A stretch of DNA of 64,000 nucleotides, from NCBI GenBank assembly GCA_038496445.1, contig JALMLS010000093.1, forward strand, positions 744,001 to 808,000. The letters run 5' to 3'. Below are positions 19,162-40,420 of the stretch, piece after piece (the first letter of the stretch is position 1; each line of letters starts with the position of its first letter). The position numbers and the translations under genes are program-made. The notes under the pieces were generated by a model, which ran no database searches, was not told the origin of the DNA, and saw only the letters and a list, made by a program, of their open reading frames with translations. This stretch comes from Trichosphaerium sp. ATCC 40318. Its lineage: Eukaryota > Protista > Tubulinea.

Positions 19162-21804
19162 ATGTGGTATCAGATACAGTTGCTACTGTGTTGCTGTGTA
19201 GGTAAGGCAAAGCAACTTTAGGCGATTATGGAACCAACTAACACTTTGCAGTAGTCTCACTTCAATTTGATACACCAGTATTTAATCGTTATCACGACTC
19301 TCACAGGTTGTTTACCAATGCCAGTGCTCTTACAGAATCACACATAGCTGTTGGGACGATTGAAGGCGAAACAATGTATGCCTACGCAACAGGAGGTGAT
19401 CTAAATATGATTTATAAAAAATAATTGTTTTTGTAGTGTTTTTCGCTTCTCCCCTTTTCCTTTCGCGTGGTGTCTACATCGCGGTTGCCACTCCAGCAGG
19501 TACAAATTTAATCTTACATCCAAGGTAAACAAAGACTAGAATTTCTTACAAGCACTGTCACGTGCTTTTGTGAACGTTTTACGTTTTTTTATGTTTGTCG
19601 TTCTTTACCAGCTATGTTTACGTTGGCAATGCGTATTTTTTTAACCGTATCAGTCGTATGTAGCCAATTGATAAAATGATAAAATTGTTAACCGTTTATT
19701 GCCAGTTATAGCAATACCAGAAAAGTGAAGTTTACTTTTTTTGTAGAGTTTTTAAAGAGTAATGTTACACTACTGTATATTGAAGATGCTTCAACCCCTT
19801 ACATACCACCATTCAAAGATTTCCTCACTGTATTCTATACCATCGGCAATTCACTGGAACTTGAATCTAGGGTATACACGATGAAGAATGGGAGTGTAAG
19901 TTAAGACTGAATACTTTTTATAATCGTATATTTACTCTAAAACCAGTTTGTCATTAGTTGTAACTAACATATTTCTGTTGTCATTAGTTTGAAGATCCAA
20001 TAGTTACATCATCATTTCATAGACAGCCTATAAGTATGAAGGGATTTCGGGGAATAGGTAACTTGAATAAAACAAACTTTCTTTGAGATCTGACATTTTT
20101 TTAGGTACCACTATTGAGCTGTGGGAATATGCAAAACCTGACGCCGCGCAAGATCAGCCCTCTAAATACTTTTATTCATTCATGGCTGGTGATACGTTGC
20201 CAATGCTTAATACAAGTAATAGATAAAAAATACCTTTTTGACTTGTTCATTTATTTGCTTACATAGTTATTCGGCCAACACATCACTTTACAATTAAACC
20301 AAATGTACCTCAATTCGAACGCCTTGGATCAAACTGTTTCTTGGCAGCAACGTTTAGAGATGTCAATGACAATATAACCTTCACTCTCGGTGATCCTGCA
20401 CCAGTAAGACACTTCATTCTGCTGATTACTTTTTGTTTTTTATTGTTTCTTTTAGATCACAGCACTTGATACAAGGACTATTGCCGTTGGTTCAGTAACT
20501 ATGAAGTTTATTGTTACGGCAATTAACACAGAAAGAAAAAAGTTACTTCTTGGCGTTGTAGATACTACTGAAACAATAACATTGTATCAGTTCGACTACA
20601 CAGATGTTTGCTCAACAATGGATATAAACAACTTGATTCAGTTTTCTGAACAGCCTTTACAACTCACAACAAGTGGTATCGTCCAGGTACTTGAAATACT
20701 ATCTGCTGGATCCGCTCATGAGAATGTTACATTCACAATAATAACGAATGATGGGAATGAAACAGTATTTAGAGGATATGTAAGTTACTTTTTCTTTTTG
20801 CGATTGTAAAAATACTATTCCGAAAAAACGTGCACCGAACAAGTACGTTTTAACTCAACATTTGTAGGGAGATGGTGCTATTGTTGGTCCGGAGGAAACG
20901 TATCTGCAAAATGAAGTACCACTATCACTTGAAGGAGTTTGGGATGAGCAAAATAAACGCACTATTGTGTGCTATCGTCATATTTATACACTATTAACCA
21001 GAGTTTTAGGTAGTGACTCAATCACTCTCCAAATCACTGATAATGTTCCTCGATCCCATTCCATTTCCACCACCCACAATAGCTCCCTCAACATCGCCTC
21101 CATCCACCAGCCCTTCGAATGTACCGTCTATCGCTCCAACAGAATCAAATCCTCCAGAAGTACCAACACAAACTATCAGTAATTGAAGATTTGTTTTATG
21201 AATAATATTCTAACGCTGTTTAATAGTATGTGATGGTGATAAGCCTCCGGGTGCTGAGTGTGATCAAAGCCAAGGTGTTTGGATTGTAAGTGATGATGTT
21301 GTGATTCAGCCATCAACGAATATTGTGATTGATACTTCAGTTGTGTTTCAAGGTACATTGAATTACTGCCTTGATTTTGTCTTTATCTGAAGTTTTCTAG
21401 GAAACGTAGACTTAGCACAAAACTCAACCATAAGCATTTCGTCAATGACAACACTGACATTTCAAAAGTGTCCAACGTTCAATGACACTCTCAATATCAT
21501 TCTGACAGAAGTATCTGAGTCTGTTCATACATTACTCACAATTCCTCCAAATTGTGATGTATCGATCATTGACGCAACAACAGTGACAAGTGATGTTGAA
21601 GATGAATGTAGTCAGTTCACTGTCATCGAAACACAAACAGAACTTTCTGTATTATGGTCAGTCAATGATGAATGTAATGATAGCGGTATAAGCATCGGTG
21701 CTATTGTGGGTGTTGCTATCGCAGTTGTTTTGGTTGTAGTGATTATAACTGCAAGTTTGATCTACTATTTTACTTTTCATGGGAAGAGAACCTTTGTCAT
21801 TTAA
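19162..21804 (+). CDS. Type-I membrane protein, array member A (non-LamG head + shared Cys/TM cassette)
   Basis: Signal peptide MWYQIQLLLCCCV, multi-exon beta-rich ectodomain, Pro/Ser stalk, CDGDKPPGAEC...TFQKCPTFN...TM...FTFHGKRTFVI. Confidence 0.8.
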
Positions 21805-22003
21805 TTATCCAAAACGAAACAATAAAATCATATAGTTTTGTTACAAAAGAGAAGAACTTGAGTTCAGTTTTCTTCGGTAGCATTGAGTCTTGTCTACTTT
21901 TTACTGCTTTTTGGATTGGTTTGGACTTGTAAGGTTGTGAGTATGGCATCCTGTGGAGCATAAAACTTGGCTTGAAATGAAGTCAGTAAATTGTACTGAT
22001 GTA

Positions 22004-22093
22004 CATTTTCGTAGCAAACGAAAGTTCAACTATTGGTAATAGTTGTAGCATTTTCGTAGTAAAGGAAAGTTCAACTGTTGGCAATAGTTGTTG
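22004..22093. repeat. Two-copy 45-bp tandem duplication
   Basis: cattttcgtag(c/t)aaa(c/g)gaaagttcaact(a/g)ttgg(t/c)aatagttgt, starting at 22004 and 22049. Confidence 0.85.
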
Positions 22094-22159
22094 TGAATCT
22101 TTTTAGACTTGTTGCCATGAATTTACAATCCTACAACGTTTACAGCTACTCTCGACAGC

Positions 22160-22470
22160 GCAACTATGTCAAAGGAAAAAAACACGGAGAGTATAAATTA
22201 TGGATTTAGAGATTCTGATGTACTTCATGCATGGTAACAAATGCGGAGAGTGCAACGGATTTCAGAAGAATGGGCGCAGTAATAGCTCATCTCAAATACC
22301 AAAATGGTAAAGTACATGGAGAGTGTTAGCTGTGGTACAACAGCGGCCCGTTGGAAAAATGCTTAAATGTTGTCAAAGGCAAACTACATGGAGAGCAGAA
22401 GGGGTGGTACAAAAAAGCACGCTAGAATTTCATACAAACTGGTGTCATGGTAAATGCCAACGGCAACAGT
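22160..22470 (+). pseudogene. Decayed MORN-variant (YwqK-like) repeat gene
   Basis: Fragments NYVKGKKHGEYKLW and YQNGKVHGEC*LWYNSGPLEKCLNVVKGKLHGEQKGWY with stops and frameshifts. Confidence 0.75.
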
Positions 22471-22953
22471 TAAATTGACATCATATTTTCTGATACAAAC
22501 ACCCAAAATGTAGAAGTAACTAGTTGGGCTAGTAAAGAAGTTACTTGTGCTTATAAAGGGTTGTAGAACTACCTATAACAACACATCTACCACTGCTATT
22601 CTGAGAAGTTACTACACCACTATATTTTGGATATTACTTCGAATTAATAGATAAGTAACCTATGTAAACAACAATCTCTCCAATGTCAGAAGTGTCATTC
22701 CTATTTTTTTCGTTAAAAAAACTACCCAACTAGAGTGACTATGAAAAGAGAATTGCACCTGATCTTTTGTGATGCAGTACACACTCTAGCTATATAAAGT
22801 GAAATTAAGAGACAACTTAGTGTGTTGGCTTTAAGGCATGTCAAACCGACAAAGAACATTAAGAAACAAGCGCGACCATCACGTAAGGTACTCTGGGGTC
22901 TGTGATGATACTGCGTAAAATAAATACGTTATCTAATACGTATATACGACCTT

Positions 22954-24597
22954 ATGGTACCTCTTTACGCATTTATAAACCATCTAAGACGATTAGCGAC
23001 TTGTTTTGCGTTGTCAACAAAAAGTTTAGCTGTATGGCGTATACTCCTTGGTATAGTACTCGTATATGATTTAGTAGACCGATCAAAGCACTTTACGCTA
23101 TTTTATACAAAGTTTGGAGCATTACCAGCAACCGACTTGTTAAGCTCAGACTTTGACTTATTCAGCGGAAACTATTTTAGCGTTTACATGATTAACGAGT
23201 ACCATATATTCCGAATCTTTCTCTTTCTTGTATCTATAGTAGCAGCAATATCTTTATCAATTGGCTACTGTACACGTGTAGCTATAATCACGTGTTGGGT
23301 GCTCAATGTAAGTCTTCAAGAAGTTCAACCGCTGACCTATATGGGAGGTGATTGCTATCTAAGGGTTATGATGTTTTGGTCAATGTTCCTCCCTTTGAAC
23401 ACTTTTTGGTCGATTGACGCCTTTCAAAAATCACGTGCGAATAAAAATTCGTCGTTGAGCGAACAAGTAGATTCAAGTAAGGACCCAAGATTGACTCTAA
23501 GCGTTGCATCAGCGGCGTTATTGATACAACTTTCACTCGTTTATATTACAGCTTGGAGGAATAAAACAGGACCAGGTTGGATTAAAGAGTACTCTGCAAC
23601 AAGCCAGACTCTCGCTGTAGAGACATATGGAACACCACTTGGACGTATCCTTTTACGCATGCTACCTTTCTGGTTCTTTCAGACGCTCACTTGGATTGCA
23701 TTGAAACTTGAAATCATAGCACCTACACTTCTTTATTTCCCATATAAAAACATGCGAACACTTGGATGCTTTTTAATATTTTGCTTACATGCTGGGTTCC
23801 TTCCAATGCTAAGATTAGATATGTTCATATTCGTGGGATGTGTAGCACCTGTATCTGTACTAGGAGATCATATCTGGGAGTGGGTGAAGCTTCCTTCTTC
23901 GTATGCTAAAAAATTGAAAGAGTTTGCAAAATACCTTGCTAGGGTATTACCTAATAAGGCCTCACCTGTCTTGAAATCAAGCGATCGTACACATGGATCA
24001 GAAGATAGCAATGCCATCGGACTATCTACTACAACGAACATTGTTCTTCTTGTTTTGATTATCAGCGTTATTTTTTGGAACCAAGGTATTGTTGATCGCA
24101 GATACAGCCCTCCTACACCTTTTCGTCAACTAGTCTTAATAGCAAGGCTTGAGCAGCAATGGCGTATGTTTTCTCCAGATTCTCCTACATCATTCAAGTG
24201 GTACTGGGTGGAAGGGACAACTGCATCAAACCAAAAAGTAGAAATCTGGAGAGCAATAGCTTTTAATGACTTTAGTGATGACAGAATTCTTAATTTAGGA
24301 GATGGCTCTGTAGTTAAAGATCACACTGTAGAAGAGATAAGTAAATACAGACCAGATGTATACACTGTTACTCGATATCATCGATGGGTAAAGTTCTTAG
24401 AGGGCGGATACGGCAGATTTGACAAAACAAGGCACAGAACAAATGAATATGCAGTTAAGAGATACAATGCCTTAAGACCAAAAGATGATTCTATTGTTTC
24501 TATTAGTTCTTGGTCTGTAACAGAATATGTTCGTAAAGATGGATCACCTGCACAAATAGGAAAACCAGTATTTCTTGATACAATATCATTGCGTTAA
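22954..24597 (+). CDS. HTTM-domain (vitamin K carboxylase/SdpB-like) polytopic membrane protein, intronless
   Basis: SLAVWRILLG..LVYDL..R, GGDCYLRVMMFWSMFLP..FWSID, VY..A..NKTGPGW, TPLG, LH.GF...LRL..F and RLEQQWRMFSP fit the prokaryotic HTTM family pattern. Confidence 0.82.
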   Translation: MVPLYAFINHLRRLATCFALSTKSLAVWRILLGIVLVYDLVDRSKHFTLFYTKFGALPATDLLSSDFDLFSGNYFSVYMINEYHIFRIFLFLVSIVAAISLSIGYCTRVAIITCWVLNVSLQEVQPLTYMGGDCYLRVMMFWSMFLPLNTFWSIDAFQKSRANKNSSLSEQVDSSKDPRLTLSVASAALLIQLSLVYITAWRNKTGPGWIKEYSATSQTLAVETYGTPLGRILLRMLPFWFFQTLTWIALKLEIIAPTLLYFPYKNMRTLGCFLIFCLHAGFLPMLRLDMFIFVGCVAPVSVLGDHIWEWVKLPSSYAKKLKEFAKYLARVLPNKASPVLKSSDRTHGSEDSNAIGLSTTTNIVLLVLIISVIFWNQGIVDRRYSPPTPFRQLVLIARLEQQWRMFSPDSPTSFKWYWVEGTTASNQKVEIWRAIAFNDFSDDRILNLGDGSVVKDHTVEEISKYRPDVYTVTRYHRWVKFLEGGYGRFDKTRHRTNEYAVKRYNALRPKDDSIVSISSWSVTEYVRKDGSPAQIGKPVFLDTISLR

Positions 24598-24654
24598 CGT
24601 TATAAAAAACCCTTTGTACAGATTACTTGCATTGTTTTCTACAGTTAAAAAGTT

Positions 24655-24754
24655 CTGCGCAAAGTGTTAGTTGGTTCCATAATCGCCTAAAGTTGCTTTG
24701 CCTTACCTACACAGCAACACAGCAACACAGAAGCAACTGTATTTGATGACACAT
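24655..24754 (-). pseudogene. Inverted copy of exon 1 and intron 1 of member A
   Basis: Reverse complement matches 19162-19250; the intron stretch gtaaggcaaagcaactttaggcgattatggaaccaactaacactttgc is identical. Confidence 0.88.
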
Positions 24755-24882
24755 GGGGTTATCGATATAAGTTTTATTTTGTTACTATCGCAATATAAAA
24801 ACTGATTTTTTTTGTGACTTGAGGAAAACTTGTAGTTGACCCTTTTAGAATACCAGTATTTAAATGATTCTTACACATACAA

Positions 24883-25323
24883 TTACATACTAAATGGTAT
24901 CTTCCTCACAGTCAAATCTAATGTGAAGGCACAAGCGCAAAACTTCAAAGTTTTTGGACAAGCAGCGTTTAACGAAGCTATAAATCTTGTCGCAGTGACA
25001 ACCACTACAACTAAAATGCACCCTGTAGCAATACCAGCAATCACACTATTACTCAGACCGCTATCATTGCATCCGTCATTGACTGCCCATACTGCAGAAA
25101 GTTCTGTTTGTTTGTTGATGACGGAGAACTGATTGCATTCATCTTCTACATCACTTGTCACTGTTGGTGCGTCAATGATCGATTCATCACAATTTGGAGG
25201 TATTGTAGGACTGTATGAAGCGTTTCAGATACCTCTGTGATGACAATACTCGGGTCTGGAGGTACGCACTGTACTGGTAACAACAACAAAGACAGTAAGT
25301 ACTATTGATATCACGTGCGTCAT
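24883..25323 (-). pseudogene. Internally deleted, inverted LamG-family member
   Basis: Signal peptide and QCVPPDPS join directly to IVITEVSETLHTV...TSDVEDECNQF...TM; two frameshifts. Confidence 0.88.
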
Positions 25324-25577
25324 CTCTCGCTATCACCGATATTTTTACGACTTTCGGGTGCTAGATAGCTTTAGCTTGCTCTATCGCGAAACAAATTAGT
25401 TTGAAGAATTCACAAAAACAACTTGAAAAGAGCGTCAAGTTGACTTTACTTTTTTTGACTTTTATAGTCGCTGGATAGCGTCTCATACTTTGGGTTGTAC
25501 GGAATATTTCGCTTTCTTATCTGAAACAAGCAATGTACTTGCTGAATGAAAACAACAAAATGAGAACTTCCAACATT

Positions 25578-26291
25578 TTATTTGTACTCACACCTACTTT
25601 TTGCTTTTCCGTGTTCATCCCATGTGATACATGTGCCAAATAATTTACCGTCCTTGTACGAACATAGTTTTACTAGAGTTCCGTTCTCATGCCATTGTTT
25701 AAACTCGCCATTTTTGATATCATCAGAATACATACAAGATGAATAAGGTTTACCGTTTCTGTGAAAGAACTCTTGTTTCCCATTTTTTTTACCTAAATTG
25801 TAGTAGCACTTTGATTGAAGTTTACCATTCTTCCTCCACATCTCACATACCCCGTTCTTTTTACCATCAACATATACACAAGAAGACCTTACTTGCCCGT
25901 TATCATGCCATTCCTTACATAGACCTTCTGCATTGCCTTGTTCGTTGTAATAGCAGTGTTCTTTTATTTGTCCATTTTTGAGGAACAACTTATGTCCACC
26001 TAACCCACTACGCTGCCATTTGATGCCTCCGTCTTTATACCAACTGGTCCAAAGACCGGAAGGGTTTAAATTGTCATCAAAACGTGTACAAAGTGCAGCC
26101 TCTTTAGATAGTAGTGGCCATGCTATAGAAGAGTGTTTTGTAAAGTTTGAAATGTATTGTTGTATTTCTGGAGGGAGCTGGGTTAAAAAACTGTCTGTTG
26201 TCTCTTCTTCACATTCGTATGGACTGTTTGATACCAGATCGACGCTAATTAGTCGTTTAGTACCGTTATCAGCATTTATTGTTTGAAACAT
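25578..26291 (-). CDS. F-box + MORN-variant (YwqK-like) repeat protein, intronless
   Basis: FLTQLPPEIQQYISNF (F-box start), then about six W/F-xxNG-x6-Y-xx-GKxxG repeats. Confidence 0.85.
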   Translation of the reverse strand: MFQTINADNGTKRLISVDLVSNSPYECEEETTDSFLTQLPPEIQQYISNFTKHSSIAWPLLSKEAALCTRFDDNLNPSGLWTSWYKDGGIKWQRSGLGGHKLFLKNGQIKEHCYYNEQGNAEGLCKEWHDNGQVRSSCVYVDGKKNGVCEMWRKNGKLQSKCYYNLGKKNGKQEFFHRNGKPYSSCMYSDDIKNGEFKQWHENGTLVKLCSYKDGKLFGTCITWDEHGKAKSRCEYK

Positions 26292-26855
26292 ATTTTTGAA
26301 ACCCTTTTTCGTAATGATTCACCGTTTAGTGTTTATTTGGCGTACCTTTCGAGCGTTTTTGACGTAGTTTTCTGGTTTATGTCTTCTGTACCATTGTACT
26401 GCACAGTAATCGTTGAGGATCGTTCCATATTCGCGTAGGAGTTGTATTATTGCAACAAACACAAATATAGCCAAATCGGTGAATTTTAAGTCGATATTTA
26501 AGCTAAGTATGACATCTCGTTGTAGGCAAAGAAAATGTAATCGCAATGTATTTGTTTACGAACTAAATGTAAAAACCCGAAAGTTAAGCAAGCACGTGAT
26601 AACGCGATTTTTTTTTTTTTGTTCGAGGTTTCTTTTGGCGTTTCGATAGTATATATTGTAACCTACTTTAAGAGCTTATAGTCCTAGTAGTAAAATCAAA
26701 TTCTGTAACCATTGACACAGGTGGGGTAAATAGTTGTCCCGCTAGCGCTCTTAATTCGTCAAAAGTTGCCAGAAACGTGTTGTATGCGCGGACTAAGGAT
26801 GAGTGAACACCATGCTTGTGTTAAGTGTCTAGCCAAAAAAAGTCAAACAAACCAC

Positions 26856-28687
26856 ATGAGACGCTCCACGTTAGCAGTGTTGATTGCTGTTTTTACAGTT
26901 GTAGCTAACACACAGTGCATATCTCCAGAACCAGGCATTTCGAGCTGGTGGATGTTTGATACTATTATTACAAATACTACATTCGACGCTGTAGATTCAC
27001 GTGTTGGTGCCATATCTGGCGTTTATTCAACTGACTTTTCTCAAGTCGCAGTACGTTACCAGTCGAAATAGTAAGTATCTAAAGTACATAGGGACAAGTT
27101 GGCAATGGTTTAAGACTAAATGGTAGCTCGGTAGTCACAATTGAGAACGATGGTATTTTTTCTCCAGAGCAAGGTATTTATATTCAGTTTGTGCATGTGT
27201 TTTCGATTTAATGACAACAACCCTAACCGCCCAAAGGAAGCTTTACTGTAGAATTGTGGTTTAACCCGGTATCTCTTGGTAGAAAGCAATATCTCATTCA
27301 TCACCAGTCCGGTGATTCTGTCTATGGTTTGTTCATTAACAGCCGAAATGAGCTGGGATATGAGCTTGGGTTCGGTGAGTTGTTGCGTACTGAACGTTAA
27401 CCTTATATTTTACGTAGCATCTGGAGCGTATGGGAGCTCAGCTAGAGGAGATGTTACCACTACTAATTCTTGGTATCATGCTGCAATTGTATGGAAACAG
27501 TAAGAACGATATTTCTTTTCCGCCTTCTTTCAAGACTTACTCTTCAAAAGGAACACACGACATTTTGGGGCTTACTTGAGTACTATTACGCTTACTGTTA
27601 TGAATCTAACATAATTAGATGGTAATACCTCCACACCACTAACACTAAGTTCGTCACCCATATCAACAGGCAATGCGCTCTTTTTTATTGGGTCAGATAG
27701 TGACATGAACAACCTTTTCAATGGGATTTTGGATGAGGTAAGAAAACCACGTGATCCTCATATCTGTTCTAACACTTCGGCAAGGTGTCGTACTACAAAG
27801 GTGTCGCCCTTACAGAAGAACAAATACGAGACATATATGAAGCGGGTACATACTTAACAGTAGAATCTTCAATTAAAACTGTTGTAGGTACACAAGGTAA
27901 ATGCCTTCCAAGTGCACCTGATACGTCTCAACCCACAGCAATGCCTTACGCTGTGCCAACTCCACCGCTTTCACCGAGTCCAACACCACAAGTAACCTCA
28001 AAGGATCCTGCAGTTCCATCACTAGCACCAACTGACGCCGTTGTTTCTCCAGCGAATAGTACATGTACGTACAATTGTCAAGGTTTTGTTCTAAGCACAA
28101 GCACTAGCGTGCAATGGAATGATTCCTCCAGGCGGTGTGTGTAATGAAACAAGTGGGATATGGTTCGTTAAAAAAGACGTGGTGATTCAGTCAACAATGA
28201 ACATTCATGTAGAGACTTCAATTATATTTCAAGGTTTATCAAATTGCTCTTTATGTTTTATACTAATAGTACTTGTACAGGAAATGTTAACATAACGGCG
28301 AACTCAACAATACGAGTTTCTTCAATGGCAACACTCACATTTCAAAAGTGTCCAACTTTCAATGACACTCTCATTATTATTCTTACAGATGTCGCTGAGT
28401 CACTTCATACAATCATGAGGATTCCTCGTAATTGTGAGTCTTCGATTATTCAACAATCGGAAGTAATAAATGGCGTGCAAGATGGATGTAACAAGTTCTA
28501 TCGAAGAGAAACACAAACTAAACTATCTGTATTATGGTCAATTGATAGTGGATGCAGCGATAGCAGTATTAGTGATGGTGTCATTGCCATCATTGCTGTT
28601 CTTACAATCATATTTATTATCGCTCTACTCCTCACTTTTATTTGTGTAGTGTTGCTGACATTCCGAAGCAAGAGTGCAACTGTTTAG
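26856..28687 (+). CDS. LamG type-I membrane protein, member B
   Basis: Signal peptide, SSWWMFD, GQVGNGL, SFTVELW, WYHAAIVW, FIGS...FNGILDEVSYY..ALTEEQI..IYEAG..GKC, P/T stalk, shared cassette, TM. Confidence 0.85.
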
Positions 28688-29054
28688 TTTTTTACCTGAA
28701 ATAAAATATCCATTAACAGTACATTGCTTTTGTTCGTCTTGGTAATAATCTTGAGGGGCTTTGTGCTTCGAAGTGTACCTTACAAATGTAGAGATTAATT
28801 CTTAGTAACATAGATTCATAAGGCATACAAAGAGCTCATCAGTATTTGTTTATTCAATGGCAACCGCGTATTTCAAAAGTATCCTGTTTTAGTTGCGATG
28901 GTGCAAGGATGTAATAGCTTCTCGTGAAGAAAGACTTGTCTTTATAGTACTCAGTTATTTGTGTAGTGCTGACAGACGTTTGGGCCCGCTCGTGACAGAT
29001 GCATAAAACTAAACAAAGTACTACAAAAGTTACTAAGATGTATTTACTTTTAGC

Positions 29055-29433
29055 TTATGTGCATTTAGCGTAGTAGCCTGCGCTCTTTTTTAACTCGTGA
29101 TCGTATAGACGCATGTGCAGTTGTCTATTTCCTACGGATACACGCTCAGATATCAACGATATAGGTTGTTTACCGCGGCGTCTTATAACGAAGTGGTGTA
29201 CCATGAGTTTATCACCTCGTGGAACAGATTGTCTACTGTATGCCATTTTGTACGAATACAGATATCTCCCGGTGTGGTGTGAGTATACTTTTACACTAAT
29301 CCTTTTGCTTCTAGAGCCTACTGTGTACACATAGTCCCGCCCAGAAGGATCTTGGAACGCAATCGAACATGTGTATCCCAAAGTACAGGTCAGTGCGAAA
29401 GCACAGAAGAACAAATAAAGCAGATGTTGCCAT
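29055..29433 (-). other. Possible secreted protein or pseudogene
   Basis: Signal-like HLLYLFFCAFALTCTLG plus ~100 aa open frame; the nearest ATG (29433) is one base out of frame. Confidence 0.3.
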
Positions 29434-30220
29434 TGGTGTGTTGACGAAAAACAAGTGTTCTAATTCGCCTTGAAGGGTTCCTAAAAAGGAAAACCCTAAC
29501 TTATAATACCAGCAAAGTTGTTGCAAACAATGTACTAGCCAATAATGTGACAGCTTGGAAGAATGTCAAAATAGTCAAAAAAAGAAGTTAAACATCTGTT
29601 TTGGGTTTCCTAACTTCCTACAAGTAAAATTTGGTTTGCGACTATTTGACAAGAGCAAAAAATTTTGAGTTTTCTACCTGCCTACAATCTCTTAAACCCT
29701 TTTGCGCCAAGAAATGGTACGTAATTGGCAGTTTAACAGGATTTAGGGGACCAAATCGTCTTTAAGAAAACTCATAATTTTATGTTTGTCCAAAACTTTT
29801 CTTTTTAGCCAGTATTTGCTTTGTAGTTATCTGTGGGCGTAAGGTATTCGTGACAACAGTTCTTAGCTTAAATAAAAATGTCCCAAATAAAAGTCGACAT
29901 CCTTACTCATAACTTACACCATTCCATGATTCTTATGTTGCTCTACTGAGCCAGCACCGCTTTTGAGACAGTTTCGACAATTTACGCGCTTTCGAGAATC
30001 TTTAAGACGTTTTACTCACCAGAACCATCTTACACTTCAATCGCTACTTTTAACATGTAGCTATGATGCAATACTTATAGGTTGCCAAACGTATTTGCGA
30101 TTTCGTTTGTGCTGTACCGAGAAAAAGGTACTGACAGCCAAAGGGGTGTTTTCGGAAAATCAAAAATTCTGAAATTTCTCAAAAGCGACCAAAGTTAAGG
30201 CAAACAAACGCTGTAAAATC

Positions 30221-32234
30221 ATGTCCCACGTGATAATAATATTACTCACACTAGTTGTTGTTACCAACGCACAGTGCGTACCTAAAGATTCAAGTCTTAC
30301 AAGTTGGTGGCGATTTGAAGCGATTACTGAAAGCAAAGCTTTCGACCTTTTCAATTCACGTGTTGGTACCTTTGGTGGTAAAGCCTCCCAAACCACAGTA
30401 AGTTACCATTTAAAGTAGGACGTAATTAATAGTCGCAATAAGGGGCGTGTTGGCGATGCGGTACAGTTCCAAAGTGAAGCTACCTTTGTAGTTGAGAACG
30501 AGGGAATATTCGAACCTGATCAAGGTACTCAACAATGACGCTGAATTTGAAGTTTAAATTCTAAATCGCGATGATTTCTATTGTTAGGAATGTCAGTAAA
30601 TCCCTTTGTAAAAATTACTAATGGTTCTCCTTAAAGGAAGCTTTACAGTTGAGATGTGGATAAACATAAAGTCATTGGGCAGTAGACAATATTTAGTTCA
30701 TCATGAAAATTCCAACTCTGGGTTCAGGTTTTGGATAGGTGAAAATGATGTTTTGTCGACTTATGCTAAATGGGGTACGTAAAGGAACACTTTCATTGCC
30801 TGTCCTAATACTACTAGTTGGAGGTAGCACACAATCAAGTGGTATTCTTGATATTGACACTCTGGACGTTTGGCACCATGTTGGTATTGCATTCAACAAG
30901 TAAAGATTTTTTTCGACAAATATGTTTTTTTTTTTTACTCTATTTTTAGGAGTGCTGAGCAACTTATTGTTTACTTTGGTGCGTTTAGTTGAATAGGCTA
31001 TGTAGTATTTAACCCATAATGTAGACGGCGTCATGTATCCTGTAAATATGGTTTCTGGCGCTAGCATTGTCACAGATAGCAGCACACAGTTCTTTATTGG
31101 TTCAAATAATGAAGGTGATTATTACTTTAATGGCATTATGGACGAGGTATTGTTGCGATGATTTATCATTTAATAAAGGTATCATATAGGTATCATTCTA
31201 CCAAGGTGTTGCTCTGAATCTGACACAGATACAACAGATTTACAATGCGGGTAATAAACTGTTTGTACTTGACTTGCGAAAACATGAGTTAACTGTGTTT
31301 GTTAAGGATTATCTGGATTTGGAAAATGTTTTTTAATGGCAGTTCCCACAATAGCTCCTGTTGTACTAACTGAAGCACCAACTGAAGCACCAATAATGCC
31401 TACTGAACAACCAACAATACCTACCGAGCCAATGGCACCAACTCAAGTTCCTATCACAACTGAACCAACGGCTCCAGCTGAAGCACCAATAGTGCCTACT
31501 GAAGTACCAACGGGCGCACCAACGCCCACTGAGGTACCAGCGATATTGGATGTACCGACATCGATGAGTAAGTTAGAACACCTTTTTTTTTTTTTTGAAT
31601 GCTTTGGCTGAGAATGGTTTTGTAATTCTAATGATGGTAATAGCATGCAGTGGTGATAAGCCTCCAGGTGCTGAGTGTGATCAAAGTCAAGGTGTTTGGG
31701 TTGTAACTGATGATGTTGTGATTCAACCATCAACGAATATTCTGATTGAGACTTCAGTTGTGTTTCAAGGTACATTGAATTACTCGCTTTGGTTTTACCT
31801 GTAGCTTTGAGATTAGTAATAACTTTGTAGGAAACGTAAACTTGAAGGAAAACTCAACAATACGAGTTTCTTCAATGGCAACACTCACATTTCAAAAGTG
31901 TCCAACTTTCAATGACACTCTCACTATCGTTCTGACAGAAGTCAGCGAATCTGTTCATACAGTTCTTACAATACCTCCAAATTGTGAAGAGTCGATCATT
32001 GACGCAATAACAGTGACAAGTGATGTTGAAGATGAATGTAGCGACTTTTCTGCAGTAGAAACGCAAACAAGACTTTCTGTGTTGTGGACAGTCAATGACA
32101 GATGTAATGACAGTGGCCTGAGCAATGGTGCCATTACTGGTATTGCTGTCGCGGTTGTTTTGGTTGTTGTGGTTATAGCTGCAAGTTTGATTTACTATTT
32201 TACTTTTCACGGCAAGAGAACTTTTGTCATTTGA
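30221..32234 (+). CDS. LamG type-I membrane protein, member C
   Basis: Same exon layout as B; long (PTE)n stalk; tail FTFHGKRTFVI. Confidence 0.85.
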
Positions 32235-32587
32235 TACTATCACGTTCAATACATTATCTAAATAAATAATCCTCTACGTTCATCATTTGAACGTGCCGCT
32301 GAAGGGTGGTAGAATGTAAGAGACAATTTCCGAGAATACTAGCCTAAAGTTTTGCTTCTAGAACTTCATGCATTCGTCGAAGATTTAATCAAAAACTTTC
32401 AGTTTTATTCACACATTTTGAGACGGCAGTGGATCTTATTCTAAAATAGTTATTTTGTGAATTATTAACTGTGGCTTATTCTTTAATTTGTTATTAGACT
32501 TCATTAACTCAATATCGATCTTGTTTACGCGTGATCACGTGATTTTTATCGCTCGACTGGGAAAGTCAACAAATAGTATTATAAATC

Positions 32588-34488
32588 ATGTCCCATGCGA
32601 TAATTATCATACTTGCGGTCTTTTTCGTTGTTACCAACGCACAGTGCGTACCTCCAGACCCAAGTCTTTCAAGTTGGTGGAGATGTGAAGCTGTTACAGC
32701 AAATACCACCTTTGACACTTATGATTCGCGTGTTGGTACCATTAACGGTACTGGCTATTCACAAGTTACAGTACGTTACCACTTTTATGAGATTAGAAGT
32801 TATTGCTATGTACTAGGGTCGCGTCGGCGATGGGTTACGGATGGGAGGCAATGCTCATGTTGTGGTTGAGAACGAGGGAATATTTACATCGCTTCAAGGT
32901 ATTTTTAATGAAGTTCGTGTTCTAGTAGTCCCAAGATCTACCAATCTAAACTAAAACTTGCTTACTTTACCTGGAAGAGAGCTTCACTGTTGAGTTGTGG
33001 ATAAACATGGACACGACACTCATAAGCCAATATCTTATTCATCACGAGTCCGATAAAGCAGGGTTTAGTTTATGGATGGGCGACAATAAATATCTTCAAT
33101 GTTATGTTCGATATGGTACGCATATGAAACACTTAATGACTATTTACTCTATTCTTAAGTTGGAGGTCCTGCACAGTATAGCGGTGTGGTTGAATTAAAT
33201 GCTAATACTTGGCACCATGTCGCTATTTCATTCAACAGGTACGTTTTGTTAGTTGGTAGTTTGTAGGCGAAAAAAGTAGGAACGACTTTGATTGTTTGTG
33301 AATTTCAATGTCTTTGTTAGGACTGGTGATGTGCAATTTGTTGTGTATGCTGGTATGTTCATTTTACTGTACTGTTTTACAAACTGCTCAAATTAGATGG
33401 CGTTGCGTTTCCTCGAAATATAGCTGGTACCAGCGTCATTACGGAAAACAGCACACAGTTCTTTATTGGTTCAAATAATGAAGGTGGAGAACGCTTCAAT
33501 GGCATTATGGATGGTATTGTTGCGATGATTTATCATTTAATAAAGGTATCATATAGGTATCGTTCTACCAAGGTGTTGCTCTGAATCAGACGCAGATACA
33601 ACAGATTTACAATGCAGGTAGAACTGTACTTTTTTTTTTCAAATACAATCATGAGTTAACTGTGTTTGTTAAGGATTATCTGGATTAGGGAAATGTGTTC
33701 CTATGTCTCCAACTGCAGTTCCCACAAAAGCTCCTGTTGTACCAACTGAAGCACCAATAATGCCTACTGAACAACCAACGATGCCAACCGAGGAGCCAAT
33801 GACGCCAACTCCAGTTCCTGTTGCAACTGAGGCTCCAGAAGTACCAACGCAAACTATGAGTAATTGAAGCATATATTATAATAGTAATATTTTACTAATG
33901 ATGTGTTGATAGTATGTAATGGCGATAAGCCTCCAGGTGCTGAGTGTGATCAAAGTCAAGGTGTTTGGGTTGTAGCTGATGATGTCGTGATACAACCATC
34001 AACGAATATTCTGATTGAGACTTCAGTTGTATTTCAAGGTACATTGAATTACTCGCTTTGGGTAACTGAAGCTTTACGACTTTGTAGGAAACGTGAACTT
34101 GAAGGAAAACTCAACAATACGAGTTTCTTCAATGGCAACACTCACATTTCAAAAGTGTCCAACTTTCAATGACAGTCTCAATATTGTCATTACAGAAGTA
34201 TCTGAAACGCTTCATACAGTCCTTACAATTCCTCCAAATTGTGATGTATCGGTCATTGACGAAACAACAGTGACAAGTGATGTTGAAGATGAATGTAGTC
34301 AGTTCTCTGTCATCGAAACACAAACAAAACTTTCTGTATTGTGGGCGACTGACAGATGTAATGACAGTGGTCTGAGCAATGGTGTCATTGCTGGTATTGC
34401 TGTAGCGGTTGTTTTGGTTGTTGTGGTTATAGCTGCAAGTTTGATTTACTATTTTACTTTTCACGGCAAGAGAACTTTTGTCATTTGA
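32588..34488 (+). CDS. LamG type-I membrane protein, member D (possible splice-site lesion near 33513)
   Basis: Paralog of C, but the GAG codon before one donor has lost 2 nt. Confidence 0.75.
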
Positions 34489-34829
34489 TGCTGTCATAAA
34501 CAAACCATCTTCAATGTATTGTCATAATTAAAGTACCAATAAGTTATAGAAATCACACCCTAGCGCAAGATTATTCCAGACTCAAAAGAGTCTTTCATTG
34601 GTAGATTCCACATACTTTCGAAATTTTCTTGCAGAAAATTTATGACTTAGAAATGTTCAATTTGTTAGCTGAATAAATATTGGCCAAGGTTTGAAAAAAA
34701 CGCGTGATTAATCAAAATGTCTTAGTCGTAAAAGTGGTAAATTTAGTGGTAAAATCACATCAACTCCGCATCCAAAACCGAGAGTTACAGTTGAGTGTAG
34801 GTGAATACCAAAGATTAGCTGGGTAAAAT

Positions 34830-36591
34830 ATGACATCCCACGTGATAACTACAATACTTACAGTGTTTGTTGTTGTTGTAAACACTCAGTGCGTACCTCG
34901 AGACGCTAGTATTGCAAGTTGGTGGACGTTTGAATCGATTTCGGTAAACAACGTGTCTGATACTTTTGATTCGCGTGTTGGTACCATTTCTGGCTCTGGC
35001 TACTCGAAAGTCACGGCGCGTTTTCTATATTAATGAACAGTGGTTATTAATGGGAAAATAGGGTCGCGTTGGCGATGGTCTACAGGTGGGTGGTGCCGCT
35101 TATCTATTGATCGAAAATAACGATATATTTTCGCCTAATCAAGGTATTTTTCACTTCATTTTCATAGCTACCCACGTGTCTAATCTTTCTGCTAGGAAGC
35201 TTTAGTGTTGATATGTGGATAAACAAAGCGTCACTGGGTAGAATGTTCCTGGTTCATCATGAGTCTAGTGCAGGGTTCAGCATATTACTCGGTGAAGCTA
35301 TTGGAGACACTGTGCTAAATTATTTCGTTAAATTTTGTGCGCACAAAGATTCCGTTACTGTATCTTTAATTTTTTGTTACAGCTAATCGTCTTTCCATAC
35401 AAGGCGGGGCTGGTGAATTTAATCTAAATACTTGGCATCACATTGTGTTTACGTTCCACAGGTACTGTAGCTAGTTGGGTAAATTTTTTTAACGAAAAAA
35501 ATAGGAATGATACTGCTGACTTTGGAGAGATTGTTATATACATAGGTTAGTTTTTTTCTTATCTATTCGAATTTGAAGTAATATTCAAAATATAGATGGT
35601 GTTGAAAATACTCGGGATGGCAGAGTTAGCAAAAGCATTGATACAGATAGTTCTACTCCATTCTATATTGGTTCTAATAAATACGGTGGAGAACGCTTCA
35701 ATGGCACTATAGATGAGGTATGCTAAGTTTTATATCAATTCCAATCACCTTCTAAATCAATAGGTGACGTTCTATAAAGGCGTAGCTTTGAACCAGACAT
35801 ACGTTCAACAGATTTACAACGCAGGTAAGAAACTAATATTGTACATTAGCTAAACGTTTGATTAAAGGATTGTCTGGATTCGGAAAATGTTTGCCCACAA
35901 TTGCGCCTGTGACGCCATTTGTAGTGCCATCGCAAACGCAAAGTAAGAGAAGATGTTTTAGTCTTTTATCCTCTAATGATTGCCTTTGAATAGCATGTAT
36001 TGGCGATCCCCCTCCAGGTGCTGAGTGTGATATAATTGAAGGCAAGTGGGTTGTGATTGATGATGTTGTGATACAACCAACAACGAATATTCTGATTGAG
36101 ACTTCAGTTTTGTTTAAAGGTATCCAATGCTTTATTAAATTGAAACTAAATAATCTGGAGGTAATGTGAACGTGATGCAGAACTCAACAATATCTTTTTC
36201 CGCGAATACTACACTCACATTTCAAAAGTGTCCAACTTTCAATGACACTCTCAATATCATTCTGACAGAAGTATCTGAGTCTGTTCATACACTACTCACA
36301 ATTCCTCCAAATTGTGATGTATCGATCATTGACGCAACAACAGTGACAAGTGATGTAGAAGATGAATGTAATCAGTTCTCTGTCATCAAACAACAAACAG
36401 ACCTTTCTGTAGTATGGTCAGTCAATGATGGATGTGATGATAGCGGTCTGAGTAATGGTGTCATTGTTGCTATTGCTGTAGTGGTTTTTTTGGTTGTTGT
36501 GGTTATCGTTACAAGTTTGATTTACTTTTTTACTTTTCATGGGAAGAGATCCTTTTGCTCAAACAAAATCACAATAGCAACGTCGAAATAA
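34830..36591 (+). CDS. LamG type-I membrane protein, member E
   Basis: Same layout, short stalk, altered tail KRSFCSNKITIATSK. Confidence 0.83.
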
Positions 36592-38668
36592 ACTCACAAT
36601 ATTTCTTTTGTCTTAACCAATTTATTTATCTTCGCTACGAATACATGCTACAATATAAAGAAATAAACACGTAACTATAAACAACTTGTAGGTTTGTTGT
36701 TTGTACAGCCTAGAACGTACTGTAGGTACAAGAAGAATGAAGTGGAACGCGCCACACTTCAAGTCGAACCACACAAGCAAAGTATAATACAGCGACAAAG
36801 CAACGCTTATCGTATAGCGGCTATGTTTACATTTTCTGTTTACTATGGGAAATCATGTGATTTCTTAGAGTGGTTTTTTTTAGAGTTGACCACTTCTGTT
36901 TGTTTATCACTCATCTTTTGTTTTCTTAAAATCTCAAGAAGTTTTGAAGCTACATTACCACAATATACATAATCGGTATACCTTCGATACATTGTATCCA
37001 CACGCCAATCTACAAAAAAGGGAATAAGAATAAACAGTTATTGGCATAACTTATGTGACGTTAAGCGCTGCTTTGTATCCACCTTGGTTTTAAGAACTAT
37101 GAATTGTTTATGTTTTAATTTAGTGATAACATGTTCTAGACAACTTTTAAGTTCCACACATCTGACTAAACACGAAAACCAAAGTCACAAACAGCAAAAA
37201 GTTGCAAAGATTAGCAAACTTGAATGAATGTAAGATAAAAGGCATTTTTTCTAACCGCCAAAAATGCTCTCATCATACTTTATCACATGTAAAGAAACGG
37301 TTTGTACCATATATAGTTCTGATATACGTGGCATTGGAATTGTGAATCTAAAGTGAGCAGTACGCTATTAAAACGTGTGAAACGCACATTCAGGTGTAAC
37401 GCTCCAGACTAGTGAAAACAACTTAATAAAGAACTTTTTAATCTAATCTCGGTTACGTATCTCTTAAACCTTACATCAGGTCCTGACTTTTGGTCAGTGT
37501 TAAATCCAAAATATGTTAAAAACAAAATAAAGCCCCAATAGCAGCCAAAATAGTTGCTTGTGCACTTACAGTACAGTACAGATATTTATTCATAAAAGTC
37601 TATTTTTTCAGTTAACAGACAACGTTTCTCTGTCTCCATCGTTTTCTGATGTGCCATTTTTTCACACTGGTTATATACCTTGATATCACACCAGCAAAGT
37701 ACAATAAACACGGATCTAGCTTCCCATTAAGTTGTGACCCCATGGCAGTGGTGGACCGTCTTTTCTTGGTTTTTTGGTATTTGAAACCTTTCAAAGATGT
37801 GATGCTACTAAACTTGCGTTTTGCTCCCCTCTGAGTGTTAGACAATTGTTTGTATTCAGAACAATTCAAACCAATGAGTACTGCAATGACACATGCACAG
37901 GCGCCAACTGTTCTAGCTCCAGCATGTGCAGTAATGAACAACATCTACAATGTCATTTGTTGGCAAGTGAAGAAACACTGTCCTTTGAGTACTTTCGCTT
38001 CATCACCTTAAAATTGATGGCTCCTTCTTCATTATGGACATGGTAGGCTTTGGCAAGATCTATAGCCATACTCCCCACGGCAAGTTGACATATATCTATT
38101 TGAGAGAAAGTAACTTTAAACTATCTCACACTTGTACTATTTCAATCAAACTGAATTATTCTGCAATATTTTACTTTTTAGAAATGTTAGTCAATAAATA
38201 TACAGTTTTTACATATTGTATGATTTTTTGAATGACGAATACACCACAAATTGAAATAACTCTACTGTCCTTTTTTGTCCTATACTGATTAATTGCCTTT
38301 GTTTTAACCTGTTTTTTTCTCCCTTTCAGGGTTTTACAGGCACTACATTGTATTGTAGTTGCACTAGGGACTGTAAACGACTCTAAAGTAGTAGGTGATG
38401 CCATTCACGTGGTTTTGTTGTAAAAACATGATAAATAAATTCGTTGAAATTGTACACTTACTTAATGCAGCAAACTGCATAAAAACCACCTAAACATATT
38501 TTACAAGCGTAGAATACTATGCTACGGGTATTATTAGCTTGTGTTTTTTTTTTTACAATGCCACGTATTTCAGAACTATAAATGGTACAAACCCTCTTTA
38601 CATGTGAAATCACATCAACTTAAGTCCGCATCCAAAACCGAGAGATACAGTTTAGTGTAGGTGAACAT

Positions 38669-40420
38669 ATGATATCCCACGTGATAACTACAATACTTAC
38701 AGTGTTTGTTGTTGTTGTAAACACTCAGTGCGTACCTCGAGACGCTAGTATTGCAAGTTGGTGGAAGTTTGAATCGATTTCGGTAAACAACGTGTCTGAT
38801 ACTTTTGATTCGCGTGTTGGTACCATTTCTGGCTCTGGCTACTCGAAAGTCACGGCGCGTTTTCTATATTAATGAACAGCGGTTATTAATGGGAAAATAG
38901 GGTCGCGTTGGCGATGGTCTACAGATGGGTGGTGCCGCTTATCTATTGATTGAAAATAACGATATATTTTCGCCTAATCAAGGTATTTTTCACTTCATTT
39001 TCATAGCTACCCACGTGTCTAATCTTTCTGCTAGGAAGCTTTAGTGTTGATATGTGGATAAACAAAGCGTCACTCGGTAGAATGTTCCTGATTCATCATG
39101 AGTCTAGTGTAGGGTTCAGCATATCACTCGGTGAAGCTATTGGCACTGTGCTAAATTATTTCGTTAGATTTTGTGCGAACAAAGATTCCGTTACTGTATC
39201 TTTAATTTTTTGTTACAGCTAATCGTCTTTCCGTACAAGCCGGCACTGGTAAATTTAATCTAACTACTTGGCATCACATTGTGTTTACGTTCCACAGGTA
39301 CTGTAGCTAGTTGGGTAATTTTTTTTACAGAAAAAAAATAGGAATGATACTGCTGACTTTGGAGAGATTGTTATATACATAGGTTAGTTTTTTTCTTATC
39401 TATTCGAATTTGAACTAATATTCAAAATATAGATGGTGTTGAAACTTCTCGGGATGGCGGAGTTGGCAGAAGCATTGATACAGATAGTTCTACTCCATTC
39501 TATATTGGCTCAAATAATAATGGTGGAGAACGCTTCAATGGCATTATAGATGAGGTATTCTAAGTTTTATATCAATTCCAATCACCTTCTAAATCAATAG
39601 GTGACGTTCTATAAAGGCGTAGCTTTGAACCAGACATACGTTCAACAGATTTACAACGCAGGTAAGAAACTAATATTGTAAATTAGCTAAATGTTTGATT
39701 AAAGGATTATCTGGGTTTGGAAAATGTTTGCCTTTACTCGTGGGCACTACTGTTCCCACACTTGCGCCTGTGACGCCATTTGCAGTGCCATCGCAAACTC
39801 AAAGTAAGAAAAGATGTCTTTAATCTTGTATCCTCTAATGATTGCCTTTGAATAGCATGTATTGGCGCTCCAGGCGCTGAGTGTGATATAATTGAAGGCA
39901 AGTGGGTTGTGATTGATGATGTCGTGATTCAACCAACAACGAATATTCTGATTGAGACTTCAGTTTTGTTTAAAGGTATCCAATGCTTTATTAAATTGAA
40001 ACTAAATAATCTGGAGGTAATGTGAACGTGATGCAGAACTCAACAATATCTTTTTCCGCGAATACTACACTTACATTTCAAAAGTGTCCAACTTTCAATG
40101 ACACTCTCAATATTATTCTGACAGAAGTATCTGAGTCTGTTCATACACTACTCACAATTCCTCCAAATTGTGATGTATCGATCATTGACGCAACAACAGT
40201 GACAAGTGATGTTGAAGATGAATGTAGTCAGTTCTCTGTCATCAAAAAACAAACAGAACTTTCTGTAGTATGGGCAGTCAATGGTGGATGTAATGGCAGT
40301 GGTTTGAGCAACGGTGCTATTGCTGCTATTGCTGTCGTTGGCGTTTTAGTTGTGGTGGGTGCCACTGCAACTTTGATATTCCTACTTACATTCTACAACA
40401 AGAGATCATTTGTCATTTAG
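38669..40420 (+). CDS. LamG type-I membrane protein, member F (recent duplicate of E)
   Basis: Near-identical to E from the promoter (~38607 vs ~34752) through the introns; different TM segment; tail YNKRSFVI. Confidence 0.85.

Follow-up and report, generated by a model that had tools for sequence, protein, structure and literature searches.

The 64,000-nucleotide window analyzed here (positions 744,001 to 808,000 of contig JALMLS010000093.1, referred to below as contig C5, in assembly GCA_038496445.1) comes from the free-living marine amoeba Trichosphaerium sp. ATCC 40318 and carries six plus-strand genes, A to F, that share their last two exons. On balance, these genes probably belong to a lineage-specific birth-and-death family encoding a diversified set of lectin- or adhesin-like surface proteins. 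A typical member would be a type I surface protein in which a signal peptide is followed by a LamG_3 head, a Pro/Thr spacer of 14-80 residues on its own exon, a beta-helix pedestal, a transmembrane (TM) helix, and a tail of 6-12 residues. Surface display is suggested by the predicted sequences, and the LamG head is proposed to bind glycans or proteins by analogy with known ConA-like/LamG families. The glycan or protein bound, whether on food, substrate, or microbes, would differ somewhat from member to member, with the length of the stalk setting the height at which the head is displayed, and members would work as adhesins or uptake lectins without direct signaling. The family spreads through segmental and inverted duplication, loses members (D, C71a, and the relics described below), converts its cassettes, and sometimes swaps heads. 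The pedestal would act as a generic display base for many other heads.

The genome searched comprises 70.3 Mb in 642 contigs, with approximately 37% GC and short GT-AG introns. Window coordinates are used for all genes and features of the locus (Table 1); exons were joined from their coordinates to build the gene models, and searches were run with single exons or database proteins. In a self-comparison of the window, the last two exons (the cassette exons) of the six genes share 71-88% DNA identity. This agrees with the six-gene array described in a first-pass annotation of the window, except that D is frameshifted and an insert of about 5 kb interrupts the array. B, C, D, E, and F consist of ten exons each, with identical intron phases (0,1,1,2,1,0,1,1,1), and the open models of A, B, C, E, and F each contain an N-terminal hydrophobic segment and a single C-terminal TM helix. 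Two introns of E and F depart from the usual boundaries: intron 1 (35016 in E, 38855 in F) has an inferred GC donor, or alternatively a weak GT six bases upstream, and the models place a GAG acceptor at intron 9 (36160 and 40016). Stalks measure 18 (E), 26, 54 (B), 55, and 80 (C) residues, matching the range first given from under 20 to about 80, and are 39-47% Pro/Thr. The KR[T/S]FVI tail proposed for the family is present in A, C, F, and the untranslated frame of D, but is divergent in B and replaced by another ending in E. Each protein contains 8-11 Cys residues. The tails span approximately 6-20 residues and hold no cytoplasmic signaling domain of the kind found in receptor kinases, hence the earlier label of "receptor" is unsupported in its signaling sense.

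The heads of B-F belong to the Laminin_G_3 family (PF13385) by profile match. Single head exons match with E values of 1.6e-4 to 0.02, each below the cut-off when taken alone. A gene E head exon joined with its neighbors reaches 34 bits against a cut-off of 27.6, and the full-length family member P0013 reaches 75.8 bits. No PDB sequence match was found for the LamG head, which is probably closed by a disulfide between its N- and C-terminal ends. Between B, C, D, and E/F, head identity is 36-58% compared to 50-88% for the cassettes, bearing out the strong divergence noted at first sight. The description of the whole array as LamG-headed applies to B-F, while the head of gene A is unrelated to LamG.

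The cassette, initially called a Cys-rich juxtamembrane domain, contains just six Cys across some 135 residues and is instead predicted to form a three-disulfide beta-helix. A model built from a 66-row alignment, with a predicted local distance difference test (pLDDT) score of 92.5, shows short parallel strands, a hairpin, and the TM helix. Its closest structural match is residues 860-989 of IgA1 protease (3h09; Z 9.8, root-mean-square deviation 2.7, 108 residues aligned), followed by the IcsA autochaperone region (3ml3; Z 9.7), a metagenomic beta-helix domain (Z 9.2), and the pertactin C-terminus (2iou; Z 8.9). The matched autotransporter regions are the membrane-proximal ends of passengers and share 6-9% sequence identity with the cassette. 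Ten Atlas neighbors of the cassette are mostly autotransporter or PATR clusters. Foldseek returned no match at E<0.001, a PDB sequence search gave matches to the TM helix only, and neither Pfam nor NCBIfam has a model covering the cassette; Pfam matches to VSP and Amnionless were rejected as TM-driven or under the cut-off. The model therefore supports the cassette as a short beta-helix resembling autotransporter autochaperone ends, although, given the low identity and the Foldseek result, this support extends to a shared fold and not to common descent. In our reading, the modeled cassette would act as a rigid pedestal. By analogy with autochaperones, it might also serve as a folding nucleus, though this is speculation, and the pedestal may derive from bacterial autotransporter rods. 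Type Va autotransporters resemble the predicted cassette in having a membrane-proximal short beta-helix with a capping hairpin (Z 8.9-9.8), but they end in a C-terminal beta-barrel translocator, in contrast to the single TM helix, three disulfides, and globular LamG head found here.

Cassettes and heads have had different histories. In 93% of 153 pairs, the heads resemble each other less than the cassettes do, with mean identities of 41% and 53%, respectively. The median ratio of nonsynonymous to synonymous divergence (dN/dS) is alike for heads (0.39) and cassettes (0.41), whereas dS differs (1.40 vs. 0.80). The youngest pairs reverse this order, with synonymous differences per site (pS) of 0.14 in the cassette and 0.06-0.09 in the head. 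This pattern, together with its reversal, is the prediction of cassette-tract exchange among paralogs. Head and cassette trees reject each other in the approximately unbiased test (p ~0.002, 5000 replicates), and tracts of 22-30 codons without synonymous change are shared between copies. B and C share an identical tract of 73 nt containing 24 identical codons, whereas elsewhere half of their same-amino-acid codons differ (p ~2e-7, before correction for about 175 windows); because many pairs are identical over this tract, constraint at the DNA level could play a part. By these comparisons, cassette tracts have been exchanged through gene conversion, and heads have at times been swapped at the stalk, as in gene A and in C5_500, whose head is 44% and cassette 91% identical to those of its neighbor. 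The proposed pairing of a variable head with a shared anchor is upheld and extends genome-wide. In E/F, the youngest pair, the cassette (86% identity) is more diverged than the head (91%), hence the anchor is not simply constant, and much of its apparent constancy reflects homogenization rather than selection alone.

Selection on the head is not uniform. In four independent close pairs, head exons 3-5 have a ratio of nonsynonymous to synonymous differences (pN/pS) of 1.39, compared to 0.47 in the remaining exons of the head and 0.43 in the cassette. This difference between the center and the rest is significant (p=0.0016, or p=0.02 with junction codons trimmed). On these alignments, uniform purifying selection on the heads is excluded and the head center is free of net purifying constraint, whether through relaxed or positive selection; neither uniform constraint nor orthology to a known non-variable family, either of which would have told against the first-pass proposal, was found. 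Codon-model fits on 15 heads favor M2a over M1a (p=0.010) and M8 over M8a (p=0.030), while the same site tests give no signal of positive selection in the cassette. Exons 3-4 also diverge faster than their flanking introns (pooled p=0.011). The clearest case is C71b (L028 4750-5070), in which these exons differ by about 27% from L029 and L030 while the flanking introns differ by about 7% (p=2e-6), a result of either strong selection or exon-level, possibly cDNA-templated, conversion. Many of the codon changes in these C71b exons are multi-base. In gene C numbering, the high-scoring sites 125, 127, and 131 alternate with buried hydrophobic residues 126, 128, 130, and 132 along a strand, and further sites fill two neighboring segments (137-144 and 175-182), as expected for one exposed face.

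Several points weigh against this interpretation. The excess of pN/pS over 1 in the center is not significant (p=0.27), and M2a is not favored over M1a when exons 3-4 are taken alone. Site tests are inflated by recombination, and the choice of regions came after the data had been seen. The LamG head model is a single-sequence prediction from the relative P0013 with a pLDDT of 40, and ligand binding and surface localization are putative. Finally, cassette Z scores of 9-10, with no sequence match, may reflect only a common beta-helix fold. Weak diversifying selection on alternating residues of one face of the head center is therefore likely but unproven, owing to recombination, the merely predicted splice sites of the paralogs, and the post hoc choice of regions. 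It could instead be proposed that the proteins form a structural coat, such as a glycocalyx or test scaffold, under relaxed constraint, in which head variation results from neutral drift and conversion and brings no differences in specificity. The fit to exons 3-4 alone, which places 60% of sites at omega 1 and no class above 1, is consistent with such a coat, as are the frequent pseudogenes, the many predicted N-glycan sequons, and the stalks of O-glycan type. Nevertheless, the whole-head tests favor a class above 1, the exon-intron contrast in C71b is steep, and the variable sites alternate on one strand face, so that a coat is considered rather unlikely.

The adhesin-like family extends well beyond the window. 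The last cassette exon, used as a single query, finds 25 genomic places. Outside the window, 13 loci hold intact ten-exon LamG models, and intron phases are conserved across 18 members. C71a is frameshifted, no intact model was obtained for C3_554, and the LamG members C50 and C17 are distant ones. The LamG family thus numbers about 22 genes genome-wide, several of which are segmental or inverted duplicates at 87-91%. A broader cassette profile, which the first-pass annotation had suggested as a check, matches no fewer than 80 genomic places at E<1e-10 and at least 148 at E<=1e-3, with LamG and other heads among them; these counts are lower bounds, the TM helix adds to the score, and some places may be haplotigs. 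A second subfamily combining LamG and the pedestal (P0017 type) forms its own tandem arrays on contigs C191, C336, C298, C518, C385, and C497. C29 and C275 (L039 and L040) hold a paralog pair with a probable parallel beta-helix head, a Pro/Thr repeat stalk, and a diverged pedestal, and an inverted triplet of members lies at L033 (C5:495000-504900), where the middle gene has an old head and a cassette 86-91% identical to its neighbors. Neither the family nor the pedestal domain is described in the literature searched, which leaves many journals outside its coverage, in keeping with the initial impression that the system was not a recognized one; the words "laminin," "lectin," and "adhesion" were not found in the genome paper (PMC10521059). 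Against 1.84 billion representative proteins, the cassette profile finds 47, the best from Trichosphaerium and the others weak (E 1e-8 to 1e-3). The weak matches include eukaryotic contigs of other samples and carry FG-GAP, NHL, or unannotated heads, along with one receptor kinase. In P0012 (L074 8001-11177), from another eukaryote, the pedestal is followed by a TM helix and two kinase domains, suggesting that the pedestal also serves receptor kinases. A word search with P0013, limited in sensitivity and by a length window, found no protein combining LamG and the cassette outside Trichosphaerium.

Tgr proteins of Dictyostelium are Ig-like IPT/TIG repeat proteins. Their genes are clustered surface genes that undergo duplication, inversion, recombination, and birth and death (PMC12745789), a pattern to which the present family bears a likeness. 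It could thus be suggested that the family serves self or kin recognition, as tgrB1/tgrC1 do, for fusion or plasmodium formation in a multinucleate amoeba. Genes of the locus have been duplicated, inverted, recombined, and lost in a manner resembling the tgrBC hotspot (PMC12745789), and contig C181, which holds an 87% syntenic copy of the C-D locus with an 80% identical head, could represent a deep allele. However, no Pfam match to IPT/TIG repeats was found in the exons or full-length relatives, and the window contains no head-to-head pair of ligand and receptor and no signaling tail. The proven allorecognition pair and allelic polymorphism of Tgr also contrast with some 22 copies, scattered instead of forming a single polymorphic locus and known from one strain, making a kin-recognition role highly improbable.

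Expression data consist of shallow assembled contigs from two small public bulk runs of one strain, and include spliced contigs of D, the best-covered gene, along with pieces of A and other paralogs. Exon 6 of D is short by 2 nt, and a mismatch-free RNA-like contig splices 33514-33556. The frame stops at codon 256, so that the product would lack the anchor. An MMETSP protein spans the same junction in the same shifted frame. An alternative donor at 33519 that would keep the frame was rejected because the RNA contigs use 33514, and the frame-keeping model of D was retained solely for alignment and dN/dS work. Four further MMETSP proteins (P0005, P0006, P0052, and P0054) are mosaics in which parts of F, D, A, and C71-type genes are joined at shared identical tracts, and are probably assembly chimeras. 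The antisense transcript over gene E, found at low depth in one run, has three introns, all GT-AG on the minus strand, and no open reading frame over about 60 residues; its pieces are identical to E and different from F. Such a transcript could be taken to support a repertoire resembling antigenic variation, as in the Giardia VSPs, in which one or a few members are expressed at once, antisense silences the rest, and switching evades giant viruses, bacteria, or predators. No sense contig covers the heads of C or E in the two runs, and the conserved C-terminal TM helix and short tail recall the variable ectodomain, conserved TM helix, and very short tail of VSPs (PF03302). Yet transcripts of A, D, C71/C11-type, and C17 members are present side by side in the bulk data, the contigs are too shallow to show absence, and the best-covered gene is itself broken. 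CXXC repeats and the CRGKA tail of VSPs were not found, and the PF03302 match is limited to the TM helix and under the cut-off. Switching of this kind is accordingly thought very unlikely.

Gene A and the insert record rearrangement at the same locus. The head of gene A joins the cassette at approximately 21152, inside the stalk exon, and this junction is present in an RNA-like contig. A paralog of the head lies on contig C45 without this cassette, and A-type heads are also found on contigs C64 and C329. Domain library searches returned no family match for the head, for which a propeller-like fold is a guess. The insert (21.8-26.8 kb) parts A from B and contains HTTM and MORN genes as well as a copy of the C39 family locus in inverted orientation. 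Both relics reported at first were recovered on the minus strand (25317-24989 and 22563-22733). In the inverted C39-type relic, an internal deletion has placed exon 1 immediately next to the cassette exon (25317-24989), after which comes a 5' end of A-like type (24755-24659). The HTTM gene is intronless in an intron-rich genome, has only four relatives, all distant (27-29% identity), and was possibly acquired by lateral transfer. Upstream of gene F, a 57-bp inverted repeat (89%; 37283-37339 and 38553-38607) adjoins the edge of the E/F duplication.

Table 1. Features of the locus in window coordinates.
Feature	Position	Strand	Description
Gene A	19162..21804	+	13 exons, 640 aa; non-LamG head fused within the Pro/Thr stalk to a D-like stalk end, cassette, TM helix, and tail
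MORN-like relic	~22120-22470	+	Broken; flanks the rearranged insert
Relic of E/F-type LamG head	22563..22733	-	Exons 5-6; broken; 79-80% to E/F
HTTM-domain gene	22954..24597	+	Intronless, 547 aa; outside the family, inside the insert that interrupts the array
Relic, inverted C39 family locus copy	24659..25645	-	88-96% to C39a
MORN_2 repeat gene	25578-26291	-	Intact, intronless; flanks the rearranged insert
Gene B	26856..28687	+	10 exons, 471 aa; signal peptide, LamG head, 54-aa stalk, cassette, TM helix, divergent tail
Gene C	30221..32234	+	10 exons, 493 aa; 80-aa stalk
Gene D	32588..34488	+	Transcribed and spliced; frameshifted at the end of exon 6 (~33513)
Cassette example (exons 9-10, gene D locus)	33913..34488	+	Predicted ~135-aa three-disulfide beta-helix with hairpin cap, TM helix, short tail
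Antisense transcript	34730..35480	-	Spliced; crosses the 5' end and head of gene E; introns 34849-34896, 35192-35234, 35315-35400
Gene E	34830..36591	+	447 aa; 18-aa stalk, altered C-terminus
Gene F	38669..40420	+	443 aa; recent duplicate of E (91% DNA); 3' end resembles C39a

Among characterized proteins, the closest anatomy to this adhesin-like family is that of AcMBP-1, Acanthamoeba's mannose-binding protein, also amoebozoan, a type I surface protein that mediates adhesion through an N-terminal beta-sandwich lectin head on a disulfide-held stalk with one TM helix (PMC11934332). AcMBP-1 differs in its DUF4114 head, its stalk of Cys-rich repeats, and its tail of about 70 residues, as opposed to LamG_3, a Pro/Thr stalk with a beta-helix, and a short tail. 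It is not reported as a large variable family in that study (PMC11934332). The Gal/GalNAc lectin genes of Entamoeba are amoebozoan surface lectin families with gene conversion (PMC3125142), though no domain shared with them was found, and they belong to a parasite under host immunity rather than to a free-living marine amoeba. The family thus works like other protist variable surface families while falling outside the Tgr, VSP, and autotransporter groups.

A broader proposal sees the autochaperone-like beta-helix pedestal as a display base of general use among amoeboid protists, with at least 80 genes in Trichosphaerium placing LamG, propeller-like, or beta-helix heads on it. Recombination at the stalk, together with conversion and with diversifying selection acting on one binding face, would then yield a recognition repertoire directed at prey, viruses, or kin, diversified in the soma or the germline and possibly expressed under antisense control. 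This extension is regarded as doubtful. The strategy of a variable head, shared anchor, conversion, and birth and death is already familiar from other protist surface families, and the present family is an undescribed variant of it. The recognition of food, symbionts, and giant viruses by free-living amoebae is poorly known outside Dictyostelium and Acanthamoeba. The family supplies candidate binding heads that form a concrete set, can be cloned, and have their variable positions mapped, and it defines a membrane-proximal domain that is found at 80 or more places in the genome and is present in other protists.

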